From positions 496,001-560,000 of the forward strand of contig CATNEN010000005.1 in the NCBI GenBank assembly GCA_950097015.1: DNA of 64,000 bases, read 5' to 3'. Made by a program: the position numbers and the translations under genes. Below, piece by piece: positions 761-63,391 of this stretch. Within the stretch, counting starts at the first letter, position 1. The number at the start of each line of letters is the position of its first letter. The notes under the pieces are model-generated. The model ran no database searches, was not told where the DNA came from, and worked only from the letters and a program-made list of their open reading frames with translations. Source of the DNA: Macrostomum hystrix (lineage: Eukaryota; Animalia; Platyhelminthes).

Positions 761-911
761 AGATTGAGTTGTATATAACTTTTTATATAGAATTGCGTTA
801 AACAACTGTTTAAACACAGGATTGAGTTATCTGTTGGATTATCTGATAGACAAAATATGATCGTAGAACAACTTGCTAAACATAGAAACATCTGTCTGAA
901 CAATTATCAAG

Positions 912-1349: not shown

Positions 1350-1413
1350 GATGGTAGCTCGAACTAGGCGGCTGTTGACTTGTGGTTAGATCGTCGGACT
1401 TACGGCTTGAACC

Positions 1414-1599
1414 CAGTGGCGTTGCCAGGATTTTTTTTCTAGGGGGGGGGCGTCTCTTGGGGCGCCTCAACAAGGCGGGGTGCCATTATTCTACGAGAGC
1501 GCCATTATTCCACGGGGTGCCACTACATGCATCTACATCAGCCGACAGGGGGGAGGGGCACGGCCCCCTTAATTGCCCCCCTGCATGGATAAGCCCCTG
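1414..1599. mobile_element. GC-rich MITE-like non-autonomous DNA element
   Basis: Imperfect terminal inverted repeats CAGTGGCGTTGCCAGG / CATGGATAAGCCCCTG, internal G and C runs; no clear TSD. Confidence 0.5.
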
Positions 1600-3954: not shown

Positions 3955-4135
3955 CTAGTTAGAGATTAGGACTTGTGACTGAGTGGTCGGAGGTTCGATT
4001 CTCATCTTAAGGGAAGCAGCCAGTGTCCTAGACCTAGAGCTAGACTACTCATACAGCTTCATTCAACTGAGCTGTAAAATAGGCCAGCCAGCAGCGACTT
4101 CACAGTCTGTGGACTGAATAGTGTAGCTGTAACAT
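3955..4135 (+). mobile_element. tRNA-derived, CORE-like SINE remnant, antisense just downstream of the PCBP stop
   Basis: B-box-like GGTTCGATTCTC near 3992 preceded by a tRNA-like TAGTTAGAG..GGACTTGTGA. The downstream GTGTCC...CAGCTTCATTCAACTGAGCTGTAAAATAGG resembles the CORE/MIR domain. Confidence 0.5.
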
Positions 4136-4148
4136 GGACAAGCGACAC

Positions 4149-13809
<9,661 letters not shown>

Positions 13810-15455: not shown

Positions 15456-16259
15456 TCTCTCCTCTCTCCTGCTCTCTCTCTCCCTCTCCCCCTCTCTCCT
15501 CTCTCCCCCTCTCTCCCCTCTCTCCCTCTCTCTCCTCTCTCCCCCTCTCTCCTCTCTCCCCTCTCTCCCCCTCTCTTCTCTCTCTCCCCTGCCACCCGTC
15601 TCTGCCGCTCCGACTCTCTCCCTCCCTATGCCACTCTCTCCCTTTCCTCTTTTCTACCTCTCTTGCTTGTTATATCTTTATCTTTTGACCCTATTTCTTC
15701 TCTAGACCCACTCGCTTCACAAATCCTATTTTTTCTCTCCCTGACTCCCGTTCATCCAACCTTACCTCAGTTGTTCCTCCCTTAGACTAGTGAGCTACTT
15801 ATCCCTAAGGGAAGCCTAAAAACTTTGTCAAGTCATTTGTTAACATGTTATAAAATATCAGCCGAAGATTTTTTGTTAGTTTATTAGAAGACGGACAGAG
15901 ACAGGCACTGTACCTGGGACAACCTAGGATTGATGGAATCCAGTTAGAGAGACAGCAACAGAAACACTGACAACTTCGACCTCCCACCAATTCAAGTTCA
16001 ACGTTCAAGTATAGATGAACTTGGGCCATTGTGTGCAACAAGGGGCATTGCTACTGACAGTCGATCTCTGTAGAAGAAAGCAACAGCGTTTTGAGGAATA
16101 AATGCAACCCTGACGAATATTCGTGGGAATTTTTCCTTTAGCCGTCTTTCTTCCTATAGGTTGCTGCTTGCGTCACAAGGCTCAGGCTAGCAGCTTCGCA
16201 AATAGCCACCCAAATGGGAAGCGTTTCATGAAGAACAAAGATGAAATTAATTGAGAGAG

Positions 16260-17115
16260 TAGGAGAAGAGTAGAAAAGCAGAGGAAAGAGAGAGGAAAAA
16301 AGGGAGAGGAAGAAAAAGGAAAAGAGGAACAAAGGGGAGAGGAAGAAAGGGAGAGAGGAAGAAAGTGGAGAGGAAGAAAAAAGGGAAAGAGGAACAAAGG
16401 GGAGAGGAAGAAAGGGGGAGAGGAAGAAAGTGGAGAGGAAGAAAAAAGGGAAAGAGGAAGAAAGGGGGAGAGGAAGAAAGTGGAGAGGAAGAAAAGGGGA
16501 GAGGAAGAAAGGGGGAAAGAGGAACATAGGTTTGAGGAACAAAGGGTAGAGGAACAAAGGGAGAGGAAGAAAGGGGAAGAGGAAGAAAAGGGAAGAGGAA
16601 GAAAAGGGGAGAGGAAGAAAGGGGGAGAGGAAGAAAGGGGGAGAGGAAGAAAGGGGGAGAGGAAGAAAAGGGGAGAGGAACAAAGGGTAGAGGAACAAAG
16701 GGAGAGGAAGAAAGGGGGAAAGAGAAACAAAGGGAGAGAGGAAGAAAGGGGAGAGGAACAAAGGGTAGACGAAGAAAGGGGAGAGGAACAAAGGGTAGAC
16801 GAAGAAAGGGGGAGAGGAAGAAAGGGGGAGAGGAAGAAAGGGGGAGAGGAAGAAAGTGGGAGAGGAAGAAGGTGGGAAAGGAAGAAAGTGGGAGAGGAAG
16901 AAAGGGGGAGAGGAAGAAAGGGGGAGAGTAAGAAAGGGGGAGAGGAAGAAAGCGGGAGAGGAAGAAAGGGGAGAGGAAGAAAGTGGGAGAGGAAGAAAGT
17001 GGGAGAGGAAGAAAGCGGGAGAGGAAGAAAGGGGAGAGGAAGAAAGGGGGAGAGGAAGAAAGGGGGAGAGGAAGAAAGCGGGAGAGGAAGAAAGTGGGAG
17101 AGGAAGAAAGGGATA
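16260..17115. repeat. GA-rich ~16-bp satellite (GAGGAAGAAAGGGGGA)
   Basis: Direct repetition; purine-only strand. Confidence 0.9.
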
Positions 17116-17622
17116 GAGGGATGGATGGCGATAGGAAGAGAGAGGTGAGCACTGAAGCGTTGAAGAAGAAGCGCAGGGGTTAAGAAAAAAATTGCCAATA
17201 TTTTGATTTTTTTAAATATTCTTTGTCAGGGCAGAACGCCAGGCAGAACAGTAGGGAGAGGGGAGAGAGGTGGAGAGAGAAATAGCTGGATTAAGAAGGC
17301 GGAGAAGAAGAAAGAGGACGCAGAAGAGGAAGATTTAGCAACGAGTCCCGCGATAGAAGATTGTAGAACTAAAACAAAACGGAAATAATTTTGCGCTAAA
17401 AATTTGGAGGATAAAAAGGGAGTATAAAAGGGATTTGGCCTCCAGTAAAGAGGACCTGAATTCAGTTCCAAAGTTATTGCTTATAGTTTTATCAATACAA
17501 TTTGGTGATCTTTTGCTTTATTCCATTGACATTTCCCCTGGCGGCTATGGCTATGGACAATAAAACTGCACCTTTAGATTTAGTGATTGGATTTTCAAAT
17601 AGTTATGGGCTACCGGGAGACA

Positions 17623-18457
17623 GGAGGGTGAGAGGGAGGTTGGGAGACAGGAGGGTGAGAGGGAGGTTGGGAGACAGGAGGGTGAGAGGGAGGTTTGGAG
17701 ACAGGAGGGTGAGAGGGAGGTTGGGAGACAGGAGGGTGAGAGGGAGGTTGGGAGACAGGAGGGTGAGAGGGAGGTTGGGAGACAGGAGGGTGAGAGGGAG
17801 GCAGGTAGACAAGGGGGTGAGAGGGTGGCAGGTAGACAAGGGGGTGAGAGGGTGGCAGGTAGACAGGAGGGTGAGATGGAGGTTGGGAGACAGGAGGGTG
17901 AGATGGAGGTTGGGAGACAAGGGGTGAGAGGGTGGCAGGTAGACAAGGGGGTGAGAGGGTGGCAGGTAGACAAGGGGGTGAGAGGGTGGCAGGTAGACAA
18001 GGGAGTGAGAGGGTGGCAGGTAGACAAGGGGGTGAGAGGGTGGCAGGTAGACAAGGGGGTGAGAGGGAGGCAGGTAGACAAGGGGGTGAGAGGGTGGCAG
18101 GTAGACAAGGGAGTGAGAGGGTGGCAGGTAGACAAGGGAGTGAGAGGGTGGCAGGTAGACAAGGGGGTGAGAGGGAGGCAGGTAGACAAGGGGGTGAGAG
18201 GGAGGCAGGTAGACAAGGGGGTGAGAGGGAGGCAGGTAGACAAGGGGGTGAGAGGGAGGCAGGTAGACAAGGGAGTGAGAGGGTGGCAGGTAGACAAGGG
18301 AGTGAGAGGGTGGCAGGTAGACATGGGGGTGGGAGGGTGGCAGGTAGACAAGGGGGTGAGAGGGTGGCAGGTAGACAAGGGGGTGAGAGGGTGGCAGGTA
18401 GACAAGGGGGTGAGAGGGTGGCAGGTAGACAAGGGGGTGAGAGGGAGGCAGGTAGAT
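17623..18457. repeat. 27-bp G-rich minisatellite (CAGGTAGACAAGGGGGTGAGAGGGTGG / GGGAGACAGGAGGGTGAGAGGGAGGTT)
   Basis: Tandem units; two variant sub-arrays grade into each other. Confidence 0.9.
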
Positions 18458-18961
18458 AATGCACACAGATTAGGCCCAAAAAGAGTGAGGAAAGCTATAG
18501 TGAGAGTCAGAGAGAGCGAAAACACGGGGCACACTGGGAACCGAACTACAGCCAGATCTCTGTATATTTGATTCCTACACTGGCATGTATACACACTCAC
18601 TATACAGCCGCTATTATACTGGGGGCACATGAAAATCAGGTAAACAATTCCCTAGTCGTAGCACAGATTTTTGAAGCATGCATCACAAAACCTAGCCCAC
18701 TCATTCTACCACTCTCTCTCTCTGCAGTGTTTTGTCGTTTACTCTGATTTTTTACCGTATTCAATCAACGCGCCGCACAAACACACACACACACGGACAC
18801 ACAGAAAGATTGATGAACGAATTATATTTGGTCCTGTGGTTTTTGAATGAATTGTAAAGCTGTAGTGGTAGATTGGCACAGTTACATGTAAGATATTGTA
18901 CAGCTACATCCCAAATTATCGTTAATTTTACACTTATCTGTGTCCCCGAGTTTAAGAGAAT

Positions 18962-19582
18962 AAACAGAATAGGAGAATCAACAGAATAGGAGAATCAACA
19001 GAATAGTAGAATGAACAGAATAGGAGAATGAACAGAATAGTAGAATGAACAGAATAGGAGAATGAACAGAATAGGAGAATGAACAGAATAGGAGAATGAA
19101 CAGAATAGGAGAATCAACAGAATAGGAGAATCAACAGAATAGTAGAATGAACAGAATAGGAGAATGAACAGAATAGGAGAATGAACAGAATAGGAGAATG
19201 AACAGAATAGGAGAATCAACAGAATAGGAGAATCAACAGAATAGGAGAATGAACAGAATAGGAGAATGAACAGAATAGGAGAATGAACAGAATAGGAGAA
19301 TGAACACCATAGGAGAATGAACAGAATAGGAGAATGAACAGAATAGGAGAATGAACAGAATAGGAGAATCAACAGAATAGGAGAATCAACAGAATAGTAG
19401 AATGAACAGAATAGGAGAATGAACAGAATAGGAGAATGAACAGAATAGGAGAATGAACAGAATAGGAGAATCAACAGAATAGGAGAATCAACAGAATAGG
19501 AGAATGAACAGAATAGGAGAATGAACAGAATAGGAGAATGAACAGAATAGGAGAATGAACAGAATAGGAGAATGAACAGAAT
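18962..19582. repeat. 17-bp minisatellite (AACAGAATAGGAGAATG)
   Basis: Direct repetition. Confidence 0.9.
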
Positions 19583-20076
19583 GCTTTCATTCTTTTGAGC
19601 TATCCTTGAAGCATCAGGACTATTTCCGTAGCTCTCCTAGAAGACCAACAGTGACTCGGGGAAACCAGTACTATTACTCAAGCTTAAACAAGCAGATGTG
19701 CTGAAGGTGCTACAGAATATTGTTTTAGAGGCAATGGGCAGTGAGCCGACATGCGAAAGCTTTGACGTGTTCCTTCCTGAAGGACCGGGCTACCGACTGC
19801 AAAGGCGGGGTCAGGGAATGAGGTGTCAGTATTAATTTAGCTTCTCACTGTCTGTCTTGCCTAAATCCTTCACCCAGTCAGTGTCACAAAGGCTTGCGTT
19901 GCATGCAGTGCATAAAAAAAGAAACATAGAATTACATTTTTGTCTTCGGACACACGAATAACCAATATGCAGCCAAGTGAAAACATGTCATGTGTTGTTT
20001 TCTACCCGAAAGATAATGGGGATTATTCTGAGCATCATCTGGCTGAGTACTGAAATTTTTAAATTTCTTAGAAATG

Positions 20077-22250
20077 TTACACGGGAGAGATAATACACGC
20101 GGGAGAGATGAGACATGGGAGAGATGAGACACGGGAGAGATGAGACACGGGAGAGATGAGACACGGGAGAGATGAGACACGGGAGAGATGAGACACGGGA
20201 GAGATGAGACACGGGAGAGATGAGACACGGGAGAGATGAGACACGGGAGAGATGAGACACGGGAGAGATGAGACACGGGAGAGATGAGACACGGGAGAGA
20301 TGAGACACGGGAGAGATGAGACACGGGAGAGATGAGACACGGGAGAGATGAGACACGGGAGAGATGAGACACGGCAGAGATGAGACACGGGAGAGATGAG
20401 ACACGGGAGAGATGAGACACGGGAGAGATGAGACACGGGAGAGATGAGACACGGGAGAGACGAGACACGGGAGAGATGAGACACGGGAGAGATGAGACAC
20501 TGGAGAGATGAGACAGTGGAGAGATGAGACACGGGAGAGATGAGACACGGGAGAGATGAGACACGGGAGAGATGAGACACGGGAGAGATGAGACACGGGA
20601 GAGATGAGACACGGGAGAGATGAGACACGGGAGAGATGAGACACGGGAGAGATGAGACACGGGAGAGATGAGACACGGGAGAGATGAGACACGGGAGAGA
20701 TGAGACACGGGAGAGATGAGACACGGGAGAGATGAGACACGGGAGAGATGAGACACGGGAGAGATGAGACACGGGAGAGATGAGACACGGGAGAGATGAG
20801 ACACGGGTGAGATTAGACACGGGAGAGATGAGACACGGGAGAGATGAGACACGGGAGAGATGAGACACGGGAGAGATGAGACACGGGAGAGATGAGACAC
20901 GGGAGAGATGAGACACGGGAGAGATGAGACACGGGAGAGATGAGACACGGCAGAGATGAGACACGGGAGAGATGAGACACGGGTGAGATTAGACACGGGA
21001 GAGATGAGACACGGGAGAGATGAGACACGGGAGAGATGAGACACGGGAGAGATGAGACACGGGAGAGATGAGACACGGGAGAGATGAGACACGGGAGAGA
21101 TTAGACACGGGAGAGATGAGACACGGGAGAGATGAGACACGGGAGAGATGAGACACGGGAGAGATGAGACACGGGAGAGATGAGACACGGGAGAGATGAG
21201 ACACGGGAGAGATGAGACACGGGAGAGATGAGACACGGGAGAGATGAGACACGGGTGAGATGAGACACGGGAGAGATGAGACACGGGAGAGATGAGACAC
21301 GGGAGAGATGAGACACGGGAGAGATGAGACACGGGAGAGATGAGACACGGGAGAGATGAGACACGGGAGAGATGAGACACGGGAGAGATGAGACACGGGA
21401 GAGATGAGACACGGGAGAGATGAGACACGGGAGAGATGAGACACGGGAGAGATGAGACACGGGAGAGATGAGACACGGGAGAGATGAGACACGGGAGAGA
21501 TGAGACACGGGAGAGATGAGACACGGGAGAGATGAGACACGGGAGAGATGAGACACGGGAGAGATGAGACACGGGAGAGATGAGACACGGGTGAGATGAG
21601 ACACGGGAGAGATGAGACACGGGAGAGATGAGACACGGGTGAGATGAGACACGGGAGAGATGAGACACGGGAGAGATGAGACACGGGAGAGATGAGACAC
21701 GGGAGAGATGAGACACGGGAGAGATGAGACACGGGAGAGATGAGACACGGGAGAGATGAGACACGGGAGAGATGAGACACGGGAGAGATGAGACACGGGA
21801 GAGATGAGACACGGGAGAGATGAGACACGGGAGAGATGAGACACGGGAGAGATGAGACACGGGAGAGATGAGACACGGGAGAGATGAGACACGGGAGAGA
21901 TGAGACACGGGAGAGATGAGACACGGGAGAGATGAGACACGGGAGAGATGAGACACGGGAGAGATGAGACACGGGAGAGATGAGACACGGGAGAGATGAG
22001 ACACGGGAGAGATGAGACACGGGAGAGATGAGACACGGGAGAGATGAGACACGGGAGAGATGAGACACGGGAGAGATGAGACACGGGAGAGATGAGACAC
22101 GGGAGAGATGAGACACGGGAGAGATGAGACACGGGAGAGATGAGACACGGGAGAGATGAGACACGGGAGAGATGAGACACGGGAGAGATGAGACACGGGA
22201 GAGATGAGACACGGGAGAGATGAGACACGGGAGAGATGAGACACGGGAGA
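20077..22250. repeat. 16-bp minisatellite (ACACGGGAGAGATGAG), about 2.2 kb
   Basis: Near-perfect array; source of the SHLSRVSSLPCLISPV ORFs. Confidence 0.95.
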
Positions 22251-24444
22251 ACCAAGTCTGAAACGGATTAATCATTATCTATCAACGTTTTTCTTACGAA
22301 TTTTCTTTTTACTTAAAAATCCAATGAGAAAATATCAAGTAAAAATAAATTCGATATTTTACAAATCAAAATGTCTTGGATTACGCAAAAAATAATCACA
22401 ATAAAATGATTCTTCGAGTTGCGAAGGTGCGAATGTTTTGTTAGGTGAGCTGAATTGCGCTTTAGGGTAATTTACAGTGATGATGTTGTTTAAGTGTTCC
22501 GCGCAACACTGATTTAGGCGCGGAAAAGCGATGACGGTATGGACAGAATTCTAGTCGCAAAGAGAAGGACCTTATCCCATATAATTATACATACAAATTC
22601 TATAACCTGAAGATTCGTGAATGGCGTTAGAGCGACCGACCGAATCGCGTGTGTACGCTTCTTATAGGGGCTTTTTATCCCAGGATTATAATCCCAGCAG
22701 TATGGCTGAGCCGCAAAAGGCCTTCTTGAAGAAGTCTCTGAGAGATGGAAAGCAGATGAAGCAGACGAGGGACAAGCAGATTAACCAACTGCATGCTTTG
22801 GTTACTAAGAGGATAAAAGGGGCTCGGGAAATTCTCCTCGACCGACAGCTATTAGCTCGCTTAAAATATTTTAAGAATCTTTTGAAATATTCAATCAGAT
22901 TTAGAAAATACATGCAGCTAATAATATATATTTATATTGATTCGCTTCGATTTGGCCCAGTTACTCGTACATTTCTTTTGTTGACAGTTTAAATGTTTAA
23001 TTATTATTTTAAACTGATGTTATTTAATTTAATTAATGTTAAATTTTTCATTATTTTTGTTTTTTTTACTTTTATTTTTGTAATTGTTTCGTTTGTGTTT
23101 AAAGTTGCTTGTAATTTTATTTGAATTTTAACAAAAAGTGACTTGTAAAAAACATCTTTTTTGGTCCAAAATTTCATATGCAATTATTTTTATAAAGCAT
23201 AATATTAGCTTTTTGCTTAAATTTAATAAAAACTTCCTCTCGCCTTTTGTCGCTAACGTAATGATTTTATTCAGCATTGAACGAATTTAAATTTTTCAAT
23301 AAGTCAATATAGAACATTTAACTTCGTATTCTTGAGTCTATTCTCAATCGTATTAGAAAAGCCTGACATTTGACGATTAATTCTTAGCCTTGTGTCTCTC
23401 TCCCCCCAGCGACTTAATTTTGTTATTTCCTTAAATCAGAATAATTATGGCATTATGGCAGCATGAGGATTGTATATAAAGCCGGAAGATAATCATAATG
23501 GATAGGAGAGGTGAATATGTGACTCATTGTCGTGAGAATGTCGGGGTTGAGAATGTGCGAAGTAATAAACTAGCAGAGCTTTAATTTCGGTCGTTCATTC
23601 AGAATTTCCGGTTTGGCCAAAGCTACGTCCTTAAGACTCAATTGAGAATATTGGCTTTATAAATAGCTATATAGATCAAGCGCTTTGTTGTTGACAAATG
23701 AAAAATGCCAGATTTTAAGCGTCGAATAATTTGGCTAGATAGATTTGAAAAAACAGGGATTCTGGAAGATATGACGTACGGGAATAGAAAAACATGCAGT
23801 GATTTTGGGTGTAAGGATATTTGTCATTCTGATGGACCTTTTTTAGATTTTTTTAAAAGATGCTTGGAATTAAATTCTCCTAGCTCTACAATTCACCCCG
23901 GAACAAGGCAGATAAAAATATAATCCGCAAATAGGGATGATTTTTTTCTGGAATCTTAAACCTTTTTTTGAAGAAAAAAATTAGTATTTTCTAGTTAATA
24001 GATGACATGCAGGACCTAAAGTGAAAAATGAGATTCTTAGAAGCCTAGCGTGGCTCAAATTAACACGCCAGATAGATTTAGCAACAGTCTGTATTCAGTC
24101 TAAAATTTCTCGCATATGCCCGAGCATTGAAGCTGGAAAATGGTGCAGATTTTTCTTCTTCATCTTTTTTTAATCTGCCCTGATCTCAAAATTTTACTTA
24201 TCTTCAAATACGTTCGGCAGTGCGGAAATTAAAGAATTGGCGCGCGACCTGGACTGTCTCTCCTAGGCTTCGCTATGCTGCATATCCCATATAGAAATTT
24301 TACAATGAAAAATGTCAGGGCTAGCTAGACTCTGAAAAGCTTTCCAGGAAATTACTTTTCCAATAGACAAAACATGAGCAAATAGACAAAGGATTTTAGA
24401 CACGTTAAGGCTAGTTCGTAATAATTTACCATAGTATAGACAAG

Positions 24445-45930: not shown

Positions 45931-46401
45931 CAACTCTCATTCTGTGCTTCTTTCACTTTTTCATTTCCAATCTATTTTCAAGCCATATCACTCTATTCCC
46001 CACCGTTTTCCAGTTTCATTCAATGCGAAATGGGCACAATTATCTTTGAAAACTGCATGCACCACCTGGGTCTGGAATCGCAAAGCTGAATTGATTGCAC
46101 CTACTGAAGTAGACCATATTTCAATTCTATTCCTGAAATTGGCCAACGAAAAATAACTTATTTCTTTATTATGATTCAACACCTGCTATCAATTTTCCTG
46201 TCTGGAGTTCCGTGAGGCGGGCAAAGGAAATGAAAGATTTCCATACGATTAGCCTGGAAATAAGCAATTAATTATTTTTGTACTAAAGACAGTTTCTTTG
46301 AGAGGGCTTTCGTTTGCATATTATCTGCCCTTATGGTCTTTCTTTAAAACATTCTCTCTGCTTTCTTCACCTCTAACATTGCCTCTGCTCTTACTCCACC
46401 A

Positions 46402-47308
46402 TTAACTCCCTCTCTCCCTCTCCCCTCTCCCTCTCCCCTCTCTTCTTATCTCCCTCTCTCCCCTCTCCCTCTCCCCTCTCCCCTCTCTTCTTATCTCCCT
46501 CTCTCCCCTCTCCCTCTCTCCCCTCTCCCTATCCCCTCTCTTCTTATCTCCCTCTCTCCCCACTCCCTCTCCCCCTCTCTTCTTATCTCCCTCTCTCCCC
46601 ACTCCCTCTCCCTCTCCCCCTCTCTTCTTATCTCCCTCTCTCCCCTCTCCCCTCTCTTCTTATCTCCCTCTCTCCCCTCTCCCTCTCCCTCTCCCCCTCT
46701 CTTCTTATCTCCCTCTCTCCCCTCTCCCTCTCCCTCTCCCCTCTCTTCTTATCTCCCTCTCTCCCCACTCCCTTTCCCTCTCCCCTCTCTTCTTATCTCC
46801 CTCTCTCCCCTCTCCCTCTCCCTCTCCCCTCTCTTCTTATCTCCCTCTCTCCCCACTCCCTTTCCCTCTCCCCTCTCTTCTTATCTCCCTCTCTCCCCTC
46901 TCCCCTCTCTTCTTATCTCCCTCTCTCCCCTCTCCCTCTCCCTCTCCCCCTCTCTTCTTATCTCCCTCTCTCCCCTCTCCCTCTCCCTCTCCCCTCTCTT
47001 CTTATCTCCCTCTCTCCCCTCTCCCTCTCCCTCTCTCTTCTTATCTCCCCCTCTCTCTCCCCTCTCTTCCTCTCTTCTTATCTCCCTTTCTCCCCTCTCC
47101 CTCTCTCTCCTCTCCCTCTCTCCCCTCTCCCTCTCTCCCCTCTCCCTCTCTCCCCTCTCCCTCTCTCTCCTCTCCCTCTCTCCCCTCTCCCTCTCTCCCC
47201 TCTCCCTCTCTCCCCTCTCCCTCTCTCCCCTCTCCCTCTCCCCCTCTCTTCTTATCTCCCTCTCTCCTCTCTCTTCCTCTCTTCTTATCTCCCTCTCTCC
47301 CTCTATCT
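46402..47308. repeat. CT-rich satellite (CTCTCTTCTTATCTCCCTCTCTCCCCTCTCC), left flank of the hammerhead element
   Basis: Polypyrimidine tandem array. Confidence 0.9.
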
Positions 47309-47600
47309 CAGGCCAGCACCGGCGTCTCGTACGACCGAGTCAGTGTCACGGAGTTGAGTGAGTATGGATTGAGTTGCGGGGCGCGGCCGAATCGATTACG
47401 ATATGTTGAGATTGAAAGCTGGATTTAAACAAGCGCCAATAGCCTAATGGCTAAAGCGCTAGACTAGACTCTACTGATGAGCTCCAAAAAGAGCGAAACG
47501 CGTCTGGAGTTGCCTTGGTTCGAATCCTGATTTCCATTTTTTCGATACATATCGGAATCGATTCAAACATTAGATTTTTGAAATTCAATGGGCAGTGTCC
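47309..47600 (+). mobile_element. Hammerhead-containing tRNA-derived SINE/retrozyme-like element, intact copy
   Basis: Second copy at 15209-15455; A box 47440-47450, hammerhead 47468-47510, B box 47517-47527, T6 at 47537-47542, 18-bp inverted repeats 47389-47406 / 47547-47564. Confidence 0.85.
47468..47510 (+). ncRNA. Minimal type-I hammerhead ribozyme
   Basis: Helix I ACTCTA/TGGAGT (6 bp, one G-U); core CTGATGA (47474-47480); helix II GCTC-CAAAAA-GAGC; GAAA (47495-47498); helix III reduced to one A-U pair around a palindromic CGCG loop; predicted cleavage after GTC (47504). Confidence 0.9.
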
Positions 47601-50600
47601 TCTCTCCTCTCTCCCGCTCTCTCTCTCCCTCTCTCCCTCTCCCTCTCTCCCTCTCCCTCTCTCCCCTCTATCCCCCTCTCTCCCTCTCTCCCTCTCTCCC
47701 TCTCTTCTTATCTCCCTCTCTCCCCTCTTCCCTCTCTCCCTCTCTTCTTATCTCCCTCTCTCCCCTCTCCCTCTCTCCCTCTCTTCTTATCTCCCTCTCT
47801 CCCCTCTCCCTCTCTCCCTCTCTTCTTATCTCCCTCTCTCCCCTCTCCCTCTCTCCCTCTCTTCTTATCTCCCTCTCTCCCTCTCTTCCTCTCTTCTTAT
47901 CTCCCTCTCTCCCCTTCTCCCTCTCTCCCTCTCTTCTTATCTCCCTCTCTCCCCTTCTCCCTCTCTCCCTCTCTTCTTATCTCCCTCTCTCCCCTCTCCC
48001 TCTCTCCCTCTCTTCTTATCTCCCTCTCTCCCCCTCTCCCTCTCTCCCTCTCTTCTTATCTCCCTCTCTCCCCTCTCCCTCTCTCCCTCTCTTCTTATCT
48101 CCCTCTCTCCCTCTCTTCCTCTCTTCTTATCTCCCTCTCTCCCCTTCTCCCTCTCTCCCTCTCTTCTTATCTCCCTCTCTCCCCTTCTCCCTCTCTCCCT
48201 CTCTTCTTATCTCCCTCTCTCCCCTCTTCCCTCTCTCCCTCTCTTCTTATCTCCCTCTCTCCTCTCTCCCTCTCTCCCTCTCTTCTTATCTCCCTCTCTC
48301 CCCTCTCCCTCTCTCCCTCTCTTCTTATCTCCCTCTCTCCCCTCTCCCTCTCTTCTTGTCTTCCTCTCTCCCTATCTCTCCCCCTCTCCCTCTCTCCCTC
48401 TCCCTCTCTCCCTCTCTTCTTATCTCCCTCTCTCCCTCTCTTCCTCTCTTCTTATCTCCCTCTCTCCCCTTCTCCCTCTCTCCCTCTCTTCTTATCTCCC
48501 TCTCTCCCCTCTCCCTCTCTCCCTCTATCCCTCTCTTCTTATCTCCCTCTCTCCCCTCTTCCCTCTCTCCCTCTCTTCTTATCTCCCTCTCTCCTCTCTC
48601 CCTCTCTCCCTCTCTTCTTATCTCCCTCTCTCCCCTTCTCCCTCTCTCCCTCTCTTCTTATCTCCCTCTCTCCCCTCTCCCTCTCTCCCTCTATCCCTCT
48701 CTTCTTATCTCCCTCTCTCCCCTCTTCCCTCTCTCCCTCTCTTCTTATCTCCCTCTCTCCTCTCTCCCTCTCTCCCTCTCTTCTTATCTCCCTCTCTCCC
48801 CTCTCCCTCTCTCCCCTCTATCCCCCTCTCTCCCTCTCTCCCTCTCTCCCTCTCTTCTTATCTCCCTCTCTCCCCTCTTCCCTCTCTCCCTCTCTTCTTA
48901 TCTCCCTCTCTCCCCTCTCCCTCTCTCCCTCTCTTCTTATCTCCCTCTCTCCCCTCTCCCTCTCTCCCTCTCTTCTTATCTCCCTCTCTCCCTCTCCCTC
49001 TCTCCCTCTCCCTCTCTCCCCTCTATCCCCCTCTCTCCCTCTCTCCCTCTCTCCCTCTCTTCTTACCTCCCTCTCTCCTCTCTCCCTCTCTCCCTCTCTT
49101 CTTATCTCCCTCTCTCCCCTCTCCCTCTCTCCCTCTCTTCTTATCTCCCTCTCTCCCCTCTCCCTCTCTTCTTATCTCCCTCTCTCCCCTCTCCCTCTCT
49201 TCTTGTCTTCCTCTCTCCCTATCTCTCCCCCTCTCCCTCTCTCTGACCCTCTCCCTCTCTCCCTCTCCCTCTCTCCCTCTCTTCTTATCTCCCTCTCTCC
49301 CCTCTCCCTCTCTCCCTCTCTTCTTATCTCCCTCTCTCCCTCTCTTCCTCTCTTCTTATCTCCCTCTCTCCCCTTCTCCCTCTCTCCCTCTCTTCTTATC
49401 TCCCTCTCTCCCCTCTTCCCTCTCTCCCTCTCTTCTTATCTCCCTCTCTCCTCTCTCCCTCTCTCCCTCTCTTCTTATCTCCCTCTCTCCCCTCTCCCTC
49501 TCTCCCCTCTATCCCCCTCTCTCCCTCTCTCCCTCTCTCCCTCTCTTCTTATCTCCCTCTCTCCCCTCTTCCCTCTCTCCCTCTCTTCTTATCTCCCTCT
49601 CTCCCCTCTCCCTCTCTCCCTCTCTTCTTATCTCCCTCTCTCCCCTCTCCCTCTCTCCCTCTCTTCTTATCTCCCTCTCTCCCTCTCCCTCTCTCCCTCT
49701 CCCTCTCTCCCCTCTATCCCCCTCTCTCCCTCTCTCCCTCTCTCCCTCTCTTCTTACCTCCCTCTCTCCTCTCTCCCTCTCTCCCTCTCTTCTTATCTCC
49801 CTCTCTCCCCTCTCCCTCTCTCCCTCTCTTCTTATCTCCCTCTCTCCCCTCTCCCTCTCTTCTTATCTCCCTCTCTCCCCTCTCCCTCTCTTCTTGTCTT
49901 CCTCTCTCCCTATCTCTCCCCCTCTCCCTCTCTCTGACCCTCTCCCTCTCTCCCTCTCCCTCTCTCCCTCTCTTCTTATCTCCCTCTCTCCCCTCTCCCT
50001 CTCTCCCTCTCTTCTTATCTCCCTCTCTCCCTCTCTTCCTCTCTTCTTATCTCCCTCTCTCCCCTTCTCCCTCTCTCCCTCTCTTCTTATCTCCCTCTCT
50101 CCCCTTCTCCCTCTCTCCCTCTCTTCTTATCTCCCTCTCTCCCCTCTCCCTCTCTCCCTCTCTTCTTATCTCCCTCTCTCCCCTCTCCCTCTCTCCCTCT
50201 CTTCTTATCTCCCTCTCTCCCTCTCTTCCTCTTTTCTTATCTCCCTCTCTCCCCTTCTCCCTCTCTCCCTCTCTTCTTATCTCCCTCTCTCCCCTTCTCC
50301 CTCTCTCCCTCTCTTCTTATCTCCCTCTCTCCCCTCTTCCCTCTCTCCCTCTCTTCTTATCTCCCTCTCTCCTCTCTCCCTCTCTCCCTCTCTTCTTATC
50401 TCCCTCTCTCCCCTCTCCCTCTCTCCCTCTCTTCTTATCTCCCTCTCTCCCCTCTCCCTCTCTTCTTGTCTTCCTCTCTCCCTATCTCTCCCCCTCTCCC
50501 TCTCTCCCTCTCCCTCTCTCCCTCTCTTCTTATCTCCCTCTCTCCCTCTCTTCCTCTCTTCTTATCTCCCTCTCTCCCCTTCTCCCTCTCTCCCTCTCTT

Positions 50601-52100
50601 CTTATCTCCCTCTCTCCCCTCTCCCTCTCTCCCTCTATCCCTCTCTTCTTATCTCCCTCTCTCCCCTCTTCCCTCTCTCCCTCTCTTCTTATCTCCCTCT
50701 CTCCCCTCTCCCTCTCTCCCTCTCTTCTTATCTCCCTCTCTCCTCTCTCCCTCTCTCCCTCTCTTCTTATCTCCCTCTCTCCCTCTCCCTCTCTCCCTCT
50801 CCCTCTCTCCCCTCTATCCCCCTCTCTCCCTCTCTCCCTCTCTCCCTCTCTTCTTATCTCCCTCTCTCCCCTCTTCCCTCTCTCCCTCTCTTCTTATCTC
50901 CCTCTCTCCCCTCTCCCTCTCTCCCTCTCTTCTTATCTCCCTCTCTCCTCTCTCCCTCTCTTCTTGTCTTCCTCTCTCCCCTCTATCCCCCTCTCTCCCT
51001 CTCTCCCTCTCTCCCTCTCTTCTTATCTCCCTCTCTCCCCTCTCCCTCTCTCCCTCTCTTCTTATCTCCCTCTCTCCCCTCTCCCTCTCTCCCTCTCTTC
51101 TTATCTCCCTCTCTCCCCTCTCCCTCTCTCCCTCTCTTCTTATCTCCCTCTCTCCCCTCTCCCTCTCTCCCTCTCTTCTTATCTCCCTCTCTCCCCTCTC
51201 CCTCTCTCCCTCTCTTCTTATCTCCCTCTCTCCCTCTCTTCCTCTCTTCTTATCTCCCTCTCTCCCCTTCTCCCTCTCTCCCTCTCTTCTTATCTCCCTC
51301 TCTCCCCTTCTCCCTCTCTCCCTCTCTTCTTATCTCCCTCTCTCCCCTCTTCCCTCTCTCCCTCTCTTCTTATCTCCCTCTCTCCTCTCTCCCTCTCTCC
51401 CTCTCTTCTTATCTCCCTCTCTCCCCTCTCCCTCTCTCCCTCTCTTCTTATCTCCCTCTCTCCCCTCTCCCTCTCTTCTTGTCTTCCTCTCTCCCTATCT
51501 CTCCCCCTCTCCCTCTCTCCCTCTCCCTCTCTCCCTCTCTTCTTATCTCCCTCTCTCCCTCTCTTCCTCTCTTCTTATCTCCCTCTCTCCCCTTCTCCCT
51601 CTCTCCCTCTCTTCTTATCTCCCTCTCTCCCCTCTCCCTCTCTCCCTCTATCCCTCTCTTCTTATCTCCCTCTCTCCCCTCTTCCCTCTCTCCCTCTCTT
51701 CTTATCTCCCTCTCTCCCCTCTCCCTCTCTCCCTCTCTTCTTATCTCCCTCTCTCCTCTCTCCCTCTCTCCCTCTCTTCTTATCTCCCTCTCTCCCTCTC
51801 CCTCTCTCCCTCTCCCTCTCTCCCCTCTATCCCCCTCTCTCCCTCTCTCCCTCTCTCCCTCTCTTCTTATCTCCCTCTCTCCCCTCTTCCCTCTCTCCCT
51901 CTCTTCTTATCTCCCTCTCTCCCCTCTCCCTCTCTCCCTCTCTTCTTATCTCCCTCTCTCCTCTCTCCCTCTCTTCTTGTCTTCCTCTCTCCCTATCTCT
52001 CCCCCTCTCCCTCTCTCTGACCCTCTCCCTCTCTCCCTCTTACTCTCTTCCTCTTACTCTCTTCCTTTCTCCATCTGTGCAACCTCTCACCCTCACTCTC
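47601..52100. repeat. CT-rich satellite, about 4.5 kb, right flank of the hammerhead element
   Basis: Same unit as 46402-47308 with higher-order repeats; source of the 1501-aa L/S/P ORF. Confidence 0.95.
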
Positions 52101-52749
52101 TCTCTCGCTCTGTTTCTCTCCACCTTTAATCTTACTCTACCTTCCTCAATAAACTTCTAATCCCGTTCAGCTGTCTCTATTCTGTCACGAAGTATTTAAC
52201 AATTGCAAGCACTTTTGCTATACTGTTCAATCGTCATTAACCCTAAACCAAGGCACAACGAAAATCGGCAGTGTTTATCTACGTGCCAATTCAATCTTGT
52301 CGGTGAATTTTTTCAATATCATTGGTCAGACTACGACAAAAACAAACCGTTCCAACTTCAGTACCATTTCATAACGGAGTTATAATTTTCAGTTGGATAG
52401 CTTTATTGTTTGGTACATTTGCTCGCTTATTTTCTATCGCAAGTCACGTCCAGACTAATGCAGCAGCTTTTGCTGTCTTTTTCTCTTAACATATTGGATG
52501 TCCGATATATTGCTTAACTGAGGCTGATGATTTCAGAAAAAATAATTTTACCCCATTTTTATGTATTAAATGTCAATAAGCCTACGCTATCGTTTTTATA
52601 ATGTTTTCTCTCTGGGTTTATATATTTAAAACACTGCCGAGATAATGATGGTTTCCGAGAATTCCTTTGGTGACGAAATAATTTGTTTATTTAGGAATTG
52701 TCGGGACTTGTCGGGTTTAGTTGACAAGCTCAACTGGAATTGGTGGAAT

Positions 52750-56636: not shown

Positions 56637-57910
56637 AGGCCTAGGCCTACCAGAATTAGTTATAGTAATTGAGGATAGGTATGGCATCCCCTAGTCTATT
56701 GACTGAACTGAATAGCCATAGGCCTAAGTAGTCTTCAGATGCACCAGCCAATAGCTGCTATAGTTGTACTATGCTGTTAGAGCCTACATATTGTGCCTGA
56801 TTGGGGCAGCCTTAATAATGTATTATTATCTATTTAAATATAAAGCTAGGTCTATTAGTATAGCTATATTAATAAGTATTTAAATACAATATTAAAAAAA
56901 GAAATAAATAATTTTAATTTGAATATTTTTTCACACCTTCAAAGAATATAAAAATTGAGCATAGGGCCCGTAACATATATGACAGTTGTGACAAATAAAA
57001 TAAGTATCAGTTCTTAAGTCAATGAAGTCTTGTACAAGGATAGGTATAGTTGGCCTCTACAAAATTTTGCTAACACTACAGATATGTAATTTCAACCCTG
57101 GAAATGCTCATCCGGACTCCATTTTGGAGTCTAGGGTTTTGTATAGAGATTTCAAGATGAAAATTTATAAATAAAACAAATCTAATCAACATTAAAATAT
57201 ATATTAGTTTGGCATTACTGCAACTAAAATAGAATGTAAGTATAAAAAGTTACCATTACAAAAGACAACAAATAGGCTTTGAAAGTGGTCTTGTTTTTTT
57301 AAAGTGTTTATAGTAATTGGGGCATTCAGTGATAGATTCCAATGATGAACTCTTCATCATCCAGATTTCAGACTTAGGAGCCTAAATTAGTATAATACCT
57401 AGCACAGATTTCGTCTGTTAGTGCTTTTTAGTTAGTCATCCAAACTTCCTTTAGTAACCCCAGGAAAAAAGCTGAAAATTCTCCATTTCCTGGAATTTAT
57501 AAGGTCTGGGGAACATACACCATACTACAAATGTTGCATGGTATATGCTATAGTTATTGGCACTAATGCTCCATATTATATCAAATGGGGGTCTATGTTG
57601 ATGGTATTATGCACACTCAAATAAATTTATTGAGCATGTCTAAGTGACTAAGTTTTTTTATCTTCAATTGAAACCAAACCAAGTAAGCCTTTTGGTTTTG
57701 TGTCCAGTAATGCTTTGTCACTGCATATAAACTTAGGAAACATATAAACCATTTTTGAACTGTTTTAAAATTGTACACATCCCCCAGATGTATAATTGTT
57801 ACATGTAGTCTTGAATTTAATTTATTGTCTTTAAACATTTTCAGTCAAAATCTTATCACTCGTCAAATCTGTCAAAGTCGCTTGATTAAATTGCAGTTTA
57901 GTCAACAACA

Positions 57911-58447
57911 ATGCAAGCCGCCGCTCCGAGGCTGCTAACCTGCGGCCAACGACTGTCAAGAAGCCTGACTGCTTCGCAGCGTTGGCTAGCTGCAACACCG
58001 CGGCCATTTCACTATCAGGATGTGCTGGAGATGACCAAACCAGCTGATAGCGACACTCCATATAAGAAGCTAACAACAGACTATGTGTGCACTAGCGAAC
58101 ATCTCGGCAAGAAGATTCTACACGTTGATGGCAAAGCTCTGACTTTGCTAGCCCAGACTGCCATGGTGGACATAGCGCACCTATTGCGGCCTGGTCACCT
58201 GCAGTCTCTATCTAATATATTGAAAGATCCTGAAGCTTCTAAGAATGATAAATTTGTCGCTCTAGAATTGTTAAAGAATGCTAACATCGCTGCTAACATG
58301 GTCCTGCCGGGTTGTCAGGATACTGGCACAGCTATCGTTATTGGCAAGAAGGGTCAGTACGTTATGACGCATTGCGCCGACGATGCTAGCGCTCTTAGCC
58401 AGGGTGTCTACAATACCTATACTGGAACTAGTCTGCGTTATTCTCAG
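57911..58447 (+). CDS. fumA: Class I fumarase exon 1
   Basis: ATG at 57911; Arg/Ser/Leu-rich, acid-free N-terminus; ends CAG|gtgagt. Confidence 0.95.
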
Positions 58448-61400
58448 GTGAGTCATGGTAGCTAATTAAATATGCCAGCAATTGAACTGAAAGAAAACAC
58501 TGCACTTCCATACATTAATGAGGATAGATTATCAAAAAATCTTCTTTGTTAACAATCGACGAATCTCGTGGGTAATGATCGACGAATCTCGTGGGTAATG
58601 ATCGAGGATTGTCCTGATAAATGTTAAATGAAATTCGTGAGAGATGATCGACGAATCTCGTAGGTAATGATCGACGAATATCTAGGTATTGATCGACGAA
58701 TCTATAGGGTATTGATCGACTAATCTCTAGGTATTTATCGACGAATCTCTAGGTATTTATCGACGAATCTCTTGGTATTTATCGACTAATCTCTGGGTAT
58801 TGCTCGACGAATCTCTGGGTAATGATCGACGAATCTCGTAGGTAATGATCGACGAATCTCGTAGGTAATGATCGACGAATATCTAGGTATTGATCGACGA
58901 ATCTCTTGGTATTGATCGACGAATCTATAGGGTATTGATCGACGAATCTCTTGGTATTGATCGACGAATCTAAAGGGTATTGATCGACGAAACTCTAGGT
59001 ATTTATCGACGAATCTCTTGGTATTTATCGACGAATCTCTTGGTATTTATCGACTAATCTCTGGGTATTGATCGACGAATCTCTTGGTATTGATCGACGA
59101 ATCTATAGGGTATTGATCGACGAATCTCTAAGTATTGATCGACGAATCTCTAGGTATTGATCGAGGATTCTTCTGATAAATGTTAGATGAAATTCGTGAG
59201 TAATGATCGTCGAGTCTCGTGTATGATGATAGACTAATCTCGTGGGTAAAGACAGACGAGTCTCGTGATGATGATCGACGAATCTTCTAGTTAAGGATCG
59301 ACGAATCTAGTTAGTGATAATTACGAATCTCGTAAGTGATGATGATCAACGAATTTCTTAGATAATTATCGACGAATCTCTTAGGTTTTTAATCGCCGAG
59401 TCTTGTGGGTAAAAATAGACGAATCTTGTAGGTGATCTTTAATTTGTGCAAAAAACTTGCAGTTTTTTATCTACCCGTACTTCATTATTTAAACGGCAGG
59501 TTGCACCGCTAGATATGTACGAAGAGAAGAACACTGGCACTAATCTGCCAGCTCAAATTGAGCTCTATTCAACGCCCGGCCGAGAATACAAATTCTTATT
59601 CATGGCCAAAGGCGGCGGATCTGCTAATAAAACCTTCCTCTATCAGCAGACTAAATCTGTGCTCAATCCTGAGAAGCTGTTGAAATTTGTCGACGAAAAA
59701 ATTCGCACTCTGGGCACAGCCGCCTGTCCGCCCTATCACCTGGCCGTAGTGATTGGCGGCACTTCAGCCGAGGCCTGCCTAAAAACTGTCAAACTGGCAT
59801 CCGCCCGCTATTTGGACAATCTGCACAGCAGCGGCAATGAGCACGGCAGAGCGTTCCGGGATCGCGACTTCGAAGAGAAAGTTCTAGCTCTGACTAGGCA
59901 GTGCGGCATTGGGGCTCAGTTTGGCGGCAAATATTTCTGTCACGATGTGCGAGTGATTCGAATGCCGAGGCACGGAGCTTCGTGTCCGATTGGTGAGCCG
60001 CTGTTTAAACTGGATGAAACCAGTTTCGACTGGATTGATATGGAATTGATATTGATATGCAATGCGATTTTTAGAAGTTCAGAGCCTGATACCCCCGCTT
60101 CGGAATATTTTCAGTAGGATATCTCAATTTCGGAATCTCTTCGGTGGGATATTCTAGTTTCGGAACTTTTTTCGGTAGGATATCCGAATTTCGGAATCTT
60201 TTCGGTAGGATCCGAGTTTCGAAATATTTTCAGTGGAATATCAGAATTTCGGAAACATTCGGTAGGATATACGAGTTTTTTTAATCTTTTCGGTAGGATA
60301 TCTGAGTTTCGGAGTTTTTTCGGAGGAAATCAGAATTTCGGAATCTTTCGGTAGGATATCCGAGTTTCGGAATATTTTCAGTGGAATATCAGAATTTCAG
60401 AAACTTTTCGGTAGGATATACGAGTTTTGGAATATTTTCGTTAGGATATCCGAATTTCGGAATCTCGGTGGGATATCCGATTTTCGGAAGCTTTTCAGTG
60501 GAGTATCTGAGTTTCGGAAACTTTTCAGTGGAATATCTGAGTTTGCTAAAAAGTGAAAATTCGCATTGTTTGTTGCCATGCAGGCATCGGCGTGTCCTGC
60601 TCGGCTGATCGGCAGGCTTTGGGAAAAATCACCGAGTCAGGCGTCTACCTGGAACAGTTGGAAACTGATCCCAGCAAATACCTGCCGGAGGTGCGAGAAG
60701 ACGACCTAGGCGGAGAAGTTGTCAAAATCGACCTCAATCAGCCGATGGATAAGGTGCTGTCGTTGCTAGGCAAATATCCGGTCCGAACTCGCCTGTCGCT
60801 CAGCGGCACCCTCGTTGTGGCCAGAGACATTGCTCACGCCAAGCTCAAAGAGCGCTTGGACTCAGGCGAAGGCCTGCCGCAGTACATCAAAGATCATCCG
60901 GTTTATTATGCTGGCCCGGCCAAGACCCCGGATGGCTATGCTAGCGGCTCGTTTGGCCCCACCACGGCTGGTCGAATGGACTCCTATGTGGACCAGTTCC
61001 AGGTGAGCTGTAAATCAATTAGTGTGAATTGGTGACTGTGAATTGATAAGCGTGAGTTGGTAAGTGTGAATTGACAAGCCTGAATTGGTGAGTGAGAATT
61101 GACAAGCGTGAGTTGGTGAGTATGAATTGACAAGCGTGAGTTGGTGAGTGTGAATGGACAAGCGTGAATTGGTGAGTGAGAATTGACAAGCGTGAGTTGC
61201 TGAGTGAGAATTGACAAGCGTGAATTGGTGAGTGAGAATTGACAAGCGTGAGTTGGTGAGTGTTAATTGGTGAGTGTGAATTGGTGATGTTGTACCGGTC
61301 GTCCTGCTAACAATGAGGATCCGGCGGACTCCAATATGAAGTCCAAGAATATCAGGTAGTGTAGTAGTAGCGCTGCCACCAGGGCGTCAGGACTTCTGCC

Positions 61401-63391
61401 TTCGGTGAGGTGAAGGATCCTTGGCCCGAAAGAAACGAAGTCACAAAGTCTCGAGAAGCACACAGTGCAGAGTTCCAGTTGCAATTACAGGCTGTCAGTG
61501 TCCTGCGTAGCTCGGATGGTGGGGTGGAAGGCTAAGTTAGTTTCGGGACTTAGCCAGAACTGAGCTTACGAGCAGTCACATGCAGAGACTGAAGTAGGAA
61601 ACTTAGACACTGATGGCACAGAGAACAAGCTAAGAACGACGGTTATCAAGAGAAGGTTTAAACAAGGGATAGAAGGGTTAGAGAACCAGAGGAGCGGGGC
61701 CTTTCTTTTATAGGCAGGGGCCTCCCATAGGGTCAGTGCATAGTTAGAAAACACGTGATGAAATCACGTGGTTTCTAAAAATAGCAACTGACGTCAGTGG
61801 CGCCAGAAACGTCACTCCTACGTAGGCTCCTGTCCCATAATCAAAGCCCCAAGTGCAGTAAACATGTTTACGTGCACTTTAGGAGACAAAGAGAGAGGCC
61901 AGTCACGTGAGGAGAATCACGTGCTGACGGAGTGCAGACAAACGCGCACACAAAGAAAGGGACTGGCCAGCGCGGGACAAAGAGGTGATGACTCATCCCT
62001 GGGGGAGAGACAACACACTCTAAGTGCAAGCGCTGCCGCGGGAAAGGGAGGACAAAGAGGGCAGACCGGATAGCGCCAGAGAGGGCGGGCCGGACAGCCA
62101 CTCAGTGCCGGGAAAAGGGAGCCACCTAAGCTACGGCTCACTACAGTGAGTGTGAATTGGTGAGCGTGAATTGGTGAGTGTGAATTGGTGAGTGAGAATT
62201 GACAAGCGTGAGTTGCTGAGTGAGAATTGACAAGCGTGAATTGGTGAGTGTGAATTGACAAGCATGAATTGGTGAGTGTGAGTTGCTGAGTGAGAATTGA
62301 CAAGCGTGAATTGGTGAGTGAGAATTGACAAGCGTGAATTGGTGAGTGAGAATTGACAAGCGTGAGTTGGTGAGTGTTAATTGGTGAGTGTGAATTGGTG
62401 AGTGTGAATTGGTGAGCGTGAATTGGTGAGTGTGAATTGGTGAGTGAGAATTGACAAGCGTGAGTTGCTGAGTGAGAATTGACAAGCGTGAATTGGTGAG
62501 TGTGAATTGACAAGCGTGAGTTGCTGAGTGTTAATTGGTGAGTGTGAATTGGTGAGTGTGAATTGGTGAGCGTGAATTGGTGAGTGTGAATTGGTGAGTG
62601 AGAATTGACAAGTGTGAATTGGTGAGTGTGAATTGACAAGCGTGAATTGGTGCGTGTGAATTGACAAGCGTGAGTTGCTGAGTGAGAATTGACAAGCGTG
62701 AGTTGGTGAGTGTGAATTGGTGAGTGAGAATTGACAAGCGTGAGTTGGTGCGTGTGAATTGACAAGCGTGAGTTGCTGAGTGAGAATTGACAAGCGTGAG
62801 TTGGTGAGTGTGAATTGGTGAGTGAGAATTGACAAGCGTGAGTTGGTGAGTGTGAATTGACAAGCGTGAGTTGGTGAGTGTGAATTGGTGAGCGTGAATT
62901 GGTGAGTGTGAATTGGTGAGTGAGAATTGACAAGTGTGAATTGGTGAGTGTGAATTGACAAGCGTGAGTTGGTGAGTGTGAATCTGTCAGTGTGAGTATC
63001 AGTAGCGTGATATTTTAGTGAATATAAATTAGTTACCGGAACTGATAAGTTTGAATCGTGAATCGTTACATTTTCAAGCATAAATAGACAAATATTAAGC
63101 TTTTTCCAAACACGCGCGCAGGCTGCTGGCGGTAGCATGATCATGCTAGCCAAAGGCAACAGATCTCGCGCTGTTACAGACGCCTGCAAGAAGCACGGCG
63201 GCTTCTATCTCGGCAGCATCGGCGGTCCGGCTGCCATCCTGGCTCAGAACAGCATCAAGAAGGTGGAAGTGTTGGAATATGCCGAACTAGGCATGGAGGC
63301 AGTCTGGCGAGTGCAAGTTGAAAACTTTCCAGCCTTCATTGTGGTTGATAATAAGGGCAACGATTTCTTCAAGCAATGGCAGACGGACTAA
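57911..63391 (+). CDS. fumA: Class I (4Fe-4S) fumarate hydratase, fused two-domain type, with mitochondrial presequence (572 aa, 4 exons)
   Basis: Exons 57911-58447, 59500-59992, 60584-61002 and 63122-63391; all GT/AG, phases 0/1/0, 1719 nt. Motifs: [129 protein letters not shown]. Three Fe-S ligand cysteines are retained. Confidence 0.97.
58555..59430. repeat. 22-bp minisatellite (GATCGACGAATCTCTAGGTATT) in fumarase intron 1
   Basis: Direct repetition. Confidence 0.9.
59500..59992 (+). CDS. fumA: Class I fumarase exon 2
   Basis: ggcag|GTT ... ATT G|gtgagc. Confidence 0.95.
60075..60545. repeat. ~30-bp diverged minisatellite (TTTCGGAATCTTTTCGGTAGGATATCCGAA) in fumarase intron 2
   Basis: Direct repetition. 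Confidence 0.85.
60584..61002 (+). CDS. fumA: Class I fumarase exon 3
   Basis: atgcag|GC ATC GGC ... TTC CAG|gtgagc. Confidence 0.95.
61015..63000. repeat. 14-bp minisatellite (AATTGGTGAGTGTG / AATTGACAAGCGTG) in fumarase intron 3, interrupted by a solo LTR
   Basis: The same array resumes on both sides of 61288-62145. Confidence 0.9.
61288..62145 (-). mobile_element. Solo LTR (858 bp) of an LTR retrotransposon
   Basis: Termini TG...CA (TGTTGTA / CACTACA); 4-bp TSD GTGA (61284-61287, 62146-62149); TATAAAA on the minus strand at 61707-61713; U3-side cluster of CACGTG, TGACGTCA and TGACTCA motifs; no coding remnants. Confidence 0.85.
63122..63391 (+). CDS. fumA: Class I fumarase exon 4
   Basis: cgcgcag|GCT GCT GGC GGT AGC ATG ... 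stop TAA at 63389-63391. Confidence 0.95.

Follow-up and report, generated by a model that had tools for sequence, protein, structure and literature searches.

An expressed, trans-spliced gene for a putatively mitochondrial class I fumarase in the free-living flatworm Macrostomum hystrix

Introduction

Fumarate hydratases (FH, or fumarases) occur in two classes, of which class II (FumC and human FH) catalyses the same reaction as class I and has an unrelated fold and no iron-sulphur (Fe-S) cluster. The class I, Fe-S enzyme has been described in trematodes and other flatworms, where it was suggested to perform the reverse step of malate dismutation, and it is absent from the mammalian hosts of the fluke (McNulty et al., PMC5257007). 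A catalogue of eukaryotes with class I FH has been compiled by Jayaraman et al. (bioRxiv 10.1101/158956), according to which the multicellular species have single-subunit enzymes, some flatworms, tapeworms among them, possess class I FH only, and, where both classes occur, class I is often the predicted mitochondrial form; the same authors describe Fe-S fumarases as oxygen-labile. At the protein level, class I FH has been detected by mass spectrometry in the tapeworm Hymenolepis diminuta (PMC6240649). Here we analyse a gene for a class I fumarase that lies in a 64,000-nt stretch of the genome of Macrostomum hystrix (assembly GCA_950097015.1, contig CATNEN010000005.1, positions 496,001 to 560,000), further called the window, whose first letter is position 1 in all coordinates below.

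The closest described systems are the class I enzymes of parasitic flatworms (Fasciola, Schistosoma, Echinococcus and Hymenolepis), which belong to the same phylum, are the same single-chain, two-domain enzyme and share the proposed mitochondrial and malate-dismutation role. Unlike these parasites, Macrostomum is a free-living, early-branching flatworm (Macrostomorpha), and the spliced leader of Macrostomum is joined to its fumarase mRNA. Leishmania major FH-1 and FH-2 (PDB 6MSO and 5L2R) are of the same fold family, and kinetoplastids keep a mitochondrial and a cytosolic isoform. FumA and FumB of E. coli and FumA of Alphaproteobacteria (Rhodospirillales, Sneathiella, Emcibacter) are colinear with the Macrostomum protein over the full FumA profile; unlike the Macrostomum gene, bacterial FumA genes have neither introns nor an N-terminal extension.

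According to our analysis, the Macrostomum gene is the expected orthologue of the class I enzyme documented in flukes and tapeworms, that is, a known enzyme in a new host. The first-pass annotation of this stretch had allowed that a documented presence in the lineage would lower the novelty of the gene, and this is indeed the case (PMC5257007, bioRxiv 10.1101/158956, PMC6240649). As a whole, the data are best explained by an expressed flatworm nuclear gene, trans-spliced to the leader, for a putatively mitochondrial class I fumarase orthologous to the fluke and tapeworm enzyme, and we hold this explanation with considerable, not complete, confidence.

Results

The class I fumarase gene is read from the plus strand and consists of four exons that sum to 1719 nt, i.e. 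572 codons and a TAA stop, as follows from reading of the sequence with a local check of the boundaries (Table 1). The fused class I fumarase of 572 amino acids with three spliceosomal introns, which had been proposed from the letters and open reading frames (ORFs), agrees with our model in coordinates and length. The gene model is without doubt because the four exons cover the NCBIfam FumA profile colinearly (positions 4-148, 150-312, 314-452 and 453-540 for exons 1 to 4), far beyond chance.

Contigs of public runs were compared with positions 57851-60750, a stretch that spans exon 1, exon 2 and the beginning of exon 3. A contig of 1888 nt from X5, with a word depth of 100, follows the genome through 57896-58447, 59500-59992 and from 60584 onward, introns 1 and 2 being removed exactly at the predicted sites, and the joint of intron 2 is also present in contigs of X1 and X4 (another study, two other organism codes). 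The length of the X5 contig is the sum of the 1212 nt compared, 252 nt, 270 nt and about 154 nt of 3' untranslated region (UTR), which fits the removal of intron 3. The view that this is a real nuclear gene and not contamination depended on the existence of spliced transcripts; these were found for introns 1 and 2, with exact junctions, together with a spliced leader (SL) at the 5' acceptor. The gene is real, spliced and expressed.

The leader was recognised in a contig of X2 that has 20 extra letters, GAAGACTCAATTTATTGCAT, immediately before 57896. Taken together with G57896, they match the 3'-terminal 21 nt of the 35-nt SL of Macrostomum lignano, whose sequence is printed in PMC8629364, and so place the gene in Macrostomum (M. 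lignano or a very close relative). Because these last 21 nt join the genome at the AG of 57895-57896, the fumarase mRNA is SL trans-spliced, at an acceptor 15 nt 5' of the ATG. The terminal AUG of the leader opens an upstream ORF of 15 codons, the last 28 nt of which overlap the fumarase ORF from its ATG on. The main ATG has a good context (A at -3) and the leader AUG a weak one (T at -3), pointing to leaky scanning past the latter.

At 59691 (GTC>GTA, Val) and 59859 (CGG>CGT, Arg), contigs of other runs, with organism codes A and B, depart from the window sequence. Each is a synonymous change of a third codon position, which is what purifying selection, or the presence of paralogous copies in this polyploid worm, would lead one to expect.

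All three fumarase introns begin with GTGAG and end with a pyrimidine-rich tract followed by CAG. Intron 2 splits the codon of G344, between the conserved cysteines C341 and C349. That the introns are filled with satellites, as had been noticed at first reading, was substantiated with Tandem Repeats Finder (TRF), which finds arrays in each of them: 33 copies of a 22-nt unit in intron 1 (58555-59308), 15 copies of a 30-nt unit in intron 2 (60099-60544), and in intron 3 nine copies of a 28-nt unit and 61 copies of a 14-nt unit (61024-61287 and 62146-62995), the units of intron 3 containing GTGAGT. These intron 3 units are built around what is the consensus 5' splice-site motif, so that of the 63 sense-strand GTGAGT hexamers of the whole window 54 lie in this intron (34 of them as GGTGAGT).

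The assignment to class I was made by profile searches run exon by exon. The Pfam family PF05681 (Fumerase) is matched by exons 1 and 2 (profile positions 4-101 and 105-255) and PF05683 (Fumerase_C) by exons 3 and 4 (1-120 and 122-205), with E-values across the exons from 1e-22 to 1e-45, and on none of the four exons was there a Pfam match to the class II domains Lyase_1 or FumaraseC_C. Against NF011919, the class I FumA equivalog model, the exons score 166, 268, 220 and 158 bits, together about 812 bits from exons scored singly, compared with a whole-protein cut-off of 1105, which suggests a member of the family rather than a strict FumA equivalog.

Functional residues were transferred from L. 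major FH-2 (LmFH-2), for which the cluster ligands Cys133, Cys252 and Cys346, the catalytic acid Asp135 with His334, the base Thr467 with Arg421 and Arg471, and the substrate contacts Gln134, Arg173, Gly216, Thr468 and Lys491 have been described (bioRxiv 10.1101/2022.09.03.506457). The mapping used PDB alignments for exons 1 and 2 and exact spacing for residues of exons 3 and 4, C349 being placed by its ungapped spacing from H337. With FH-2, exon 2 has an identity of about 70%, and all 13 functional residues are kept at identical spacing: C135, Q136, D137, R176, G219, C255, H337, C349, R424, T470, T471, R474 and K494. The N-terminal region is much less similar to the Leishmania enzymes (132 bits for exon 1). 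The three cysteine motifs CQDTG, ACPPY and ASCP picked out in the first reading are all present, and the [4Fe-4S] ligands map to C135 (CQDTG), C255 (ACPPY) and C349 (GVSCSADR, in the first codons of exon 3); it is thus C349, and not the ASCP cysteine C341 lying eight residues before it, that corresponds to the third ligand of LmFH-2, both cysteines being conserved. Judged by its sequence, the product is an intact single-chain class I [4Fe-4S] fumarate hydratase.

The N-terminal extension has the composition of a targeting peptide. The acid-free, Arg-rich presequence that had been claimed is confirmed by the count of five Arg and no Asp or Glu among residues 1-36, where Ala, Leu, Ser and Thr abound; over 18 residues, the hydrophobic moment reaches 0.57 in the extension, compared with an average of 0.23 over the remainder of the protein. 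Bacterial homology begins, by the NCBIfam profile, at residue 31 (RPFHYQ), where R31-P-F|H resembles an R-3 processing motif. Homologue fragments that are presumably eukaryotic have comparable Arg-rich extensions ahead of PFxYQ, only one of them, P0176, being named, as a stramenopile. Positively charged, acid-free, amphipathic and provided with an Arg motif of the mitochondrial processing peptidase (MPP) type, the extension fits a mitochondrial presequence, and import of the fumarase into mitochondria is likely because of this composition and of the similar extensions in eukaryotic homologues. The sequence features and the homologue extensions are thus consistent with the earlier suggestion of mitochondrial targeting, and the location is a putative one.

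Exon 2 is 80% identical to the Fasciola gigantica protein, 75% to that of the ichthyosporean Sphaeroforma, 77-81% to FumA of Rhodospirillales-type Alphaproteobacteria and 69% to that of E. coli. Single-exon word searches reach only proteins of about 90-313 amino acids, so their matches are fragments, few of them named, and among these fragment matches no Macrostomum entry was identified. Two of the best exon 2 matches, P0003 and P0006 (on contigs L002 and L003), were considered as eukaryotic candidates and rejected, being pieces of frameshift-split bacterial fumA genes on long-read metagenome contigs, where these genes directly follow sspB. Both illustrate how fragmentary proteins in a large database may pass for exon-sized eukaryotic matches.

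The position of intron 1 (phase 0, RYSQ|VAP, before VAPxDM) is common to the Macrostomum gene, F. gigantica (contig L001) and two further eukaryotic genes, one on the Logan contig SRR16767946 (L004) and one on a contig of the NCBI eukaryotic assembly GCA_052426985.1 (L005). Intron 2 of Macrostomum is found in none of these: Fasciola and L005 have an intron ten codons later, and L004 has none there. The Macrostomum gene has three introns in all, whereas that of Fasciola has at least four within the stretch from exon 2 into exon 3, namely the shared one and three absent from Macrostomum. The Fasciola gene also shows a micro-intron of 34 nt after EKIK, at a position common to L005. Upstream of the Fasciola class I gene (L001:10001-35567, plus strand) there is a second fragment with Fumerase_C, on the opposite strand (792-4851, minus), which could have arisen by local duplication or be an artefact of the assembly. 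In the gene on L004, the closest intron-bearing homologue, the first coding exon (1700-1948) encodes a similar presequence (AALPRLV...) and contains no ATG in frame before a stop codon is reached; the start codon must therefore be supplied by an exon further upstream or by a spliced leader.

For the maximum-likelihood (ML) tree, 59 rows and 551 columns were used, with residues 31-399 representing the window and 31 near-duplicate bacterial rows left out; several rows are fragmentary, the bacteria are the closest 80 species, and kinetoplastid and apicomplexan sequences are not among the rows. On the question of ancient retention versus horizontal transfer, the tree groups the Macrostomum gene with Fasciola, L004 and L005 (support 100/97), which speaks against a recent transfer. 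These four together with Sphaeroforma and an ochromonad, i.e. all six eukaryotic rows, form a group with support 82/86, and the nearest bacterial rows are the alphaproteobacteria Sneathiella and Emcibacter, which join the six with support 97/87. The tree and the shared intron fit an old eukaryotic gene of alphaproteobacterial affinity that would have been inherited vertically by flatworms.

A KH-domain gene, recognised at first reading as PCBP, is indeed present on the same contig, about 45 kb from the fumarase gene. The window also contains kilobase-scale simple satellites with extreme strand skew, at 16000-22300 and 46000-52200 (GC skew up to +0.69 and -0.99), the latter being a CT-rich array of 4.5 kb.

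Table 1. Features of the fumarase locus and its surroundings (positions in the window)
Feature	Position	Strand	Remarks
Acceptor AG for SL trans-splicing	57895..57896	+	leader letters in X2 contig; spliced X5 contig also begins at 57896
Mature 5' UTR	57897-57910	+	14 nt from splice site to ATG 57911
Upstream ORF	57897..57938	+	opened by the leader's own terminal AUG; out of frame with fumarase; local translation of SL ATG plus genome
Exon 1	57911..58447	+	residues 1-179; putative presequence, first part of N-terminal Fumerase domain; C135-Q136-D137 (CQDTG), R176; covered by contigs of X1, X2, X5
Putative mitochondrial presequence	57911-58009	+	about residues 1-33
Intron 1	58448..59499	+	1052 nt, phase 0, GT..AG; joint 58447/59500 in X5 contig
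Exon 2	59500..59992	+	residues 180-343 and first base of G344; KGGGS loop (G219), C255 (ACPPY), H337, C341 (ASCP)
Intron 2	59993..60583	+	591 nt, phase 1, GT..AG; joint 59992/60584 in contigs of X1, X4, X5
Exon 3	60584..61002	+	residues 344-483; C349 (GVSCSADR), start of Fumerase_C, R424, T470, T471, R474
Intron 3	61003..63121	+	2119 nt, phase 0, GT..AG; from sequence
Exon 4	63122..63391	+	residues 484-572 and TAA; end of Fumerase_C, K494 (AKGNRS)
KH-domain gene (PCBP/hnRNP-E-like)	4149-12222	minus	multi-exon, Gln/Pro-rich linker exons

Discussion

From the analysis presented above it would be natural to suggest how the Macrostomum enzyme may work. Its Arg-rich, acid-free N-terminal extension of about 30 residues would send the protein to the mitochondrial matrix, where the fourth iron of the cluster held by C135, C255 and C349 would bind the substrate; T470, with R424 and R474, would then act as the base and D137 with H337 as the acid, so that fumarate and L-malate are interconverted. 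The reaction being reversible, the enzyme could serve the tricarboxylic acid (TCA) cycle in air and, in the oxygen-poor sand of the worm, might turn malate into fumarate for fumarate reduction, as has been proposed for parasitic flatworms. These last two steps are the weakest of the chain.

Several points weigh against the explanation that we prefer. The run contigs cover the junctions of introns 1 and 2, so that the junction of intron 3 (61002|63122) is a predicted one, the leader junction comes from one contig in one run, and the runs are labelled only 'RNA?' or '?', yet spliced, SL-bearing contigs are hard to explain as DNA. As the AUG of the leader is out of frame, ribosomes can translate the main ORF only by leaky scanning or by re-initiation. 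Finally, the literature search found no paper that links Macrostomum with fumarase or rhodoquinone.

The strongest competing view concerns the role rather than the identity of the enzyme: it may simply be the housekeeping fumarase of the mitochondrial TCA cycle, any class II enzyme being cytosolic or nuclear, and its work would have nothing in particular to do with anaerobiosis. Class I is, as mentioned, often the predicted mitochondrial form in species that have both classes, some tapeworms manage with class I only (bioRxiv 10.1101/158956), and the spliced X5 contig has its high word depth in seemingly ordinary material. The oxygen lability of Fe-S fumarases (bioRxiv 10.1101/158956) argues the other way and does not settle the matter; neither is the published flatworm proposal of malate dismutation (PMC5257007) decisive, since both roles can coexist. 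We regard a purely housekeeping role as a serious possibility, at somewhat short of even chances.

It is rather improbable, in our estimate, that the protein is cytosolic or dually targeted in the manner of kinetoplastids and that its extension is no matrix signal at all. L. major does possess both mitochondrial and cytosolic class I isoforms (bioRxiv 10.1101/158956), and ribosomes that scan past the leader AUG could start further downstream too, e.g. at the AUG of M41. The extension is nevertheless classical in composition and amphipathicity, and its R-3-type motif ends where the bacterial homology starts. The best PDB match of exon 1 is, moreover, the FH-1 chain of L. major (6MSO), above the FH-2 chain, and FH-1 is what we take to be the mitochondrial isoform.

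A hydro-lyase of the class I fold with another main substrate, e.g. tartrate or mesaconate/citramalate (TtdAB- or FumD-like), might also be considered, given that class I enzymes accept tartrate and mesaconate to varying degrees (bioRxiv 10.1101/158956). Here the profiles discriminate well: the FumA and FumB models give 158-270 bits per exon, far above the tartrate dehydratase models with their 26-41 bits (TtdA, NF006084, 26 bits on exon 2; TtdB, NF006082, 29 and 41 bits on exons 3 and 4), and every malate-contacting residue of LmFH-2 is identical in the flatworm protein, which leaves this alternative very little probability.

Bacterial contamination or a very recent bacterial transfer into Macrostomum would be in line with exon 2 being as close to alphaproteobacterial FumA as to Fasciola, and is nonetheless the least probable of all, to a degree that we consider negligible: contamination is ruled out by the three satellite-filled introns, the splicing, the M. 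lignano leader, the shared intron and the tree, with an animal KH-domain gene on the same contig, and a recent transfer is unlikely because the Macrostomum gene shares intron 1 with Fasciola and with the two further eukaryotic genes of its clade, neither nesting inside one bacterial genus nor absence from other flatworms being the case.

With the preferred explanation of an expressed flatworm orthologue in mind, we may go one step further and suggest, tentatively and as a possibility that we ourselves consider doubtful, that class I fumarase is the ancestral mitochondrial fumarase of eukaryotes, derived from the alphaproteobacterial ancestor of mitochondria. The animal ancestor would still have had it, with a presequence and at least one intron; many losses would have followed, leaving it in flatworms and a small number of other animal lineages.

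In parasites, class I fumarase has been discussed as a target for selective drugs. Our analysis shows that the Fe-S fumarase of flatworms is not an adaptation to parasitism: a free-living, early-branching flatworm possesses an intact gene for it, which is spliced and expressed and has an intron in common with that of the fluke. Macrostomum lignano offers a laboratory model for direct tests of the location of the enzyme, of its oxygen sensitivity and of its role in hypoxia. If the idea of an ancestral class I fumarase were true, Macrostomum would allow the original Fe-S fumarase to be compared with the later class II enzyme in a free-living animal that is easy to work with.

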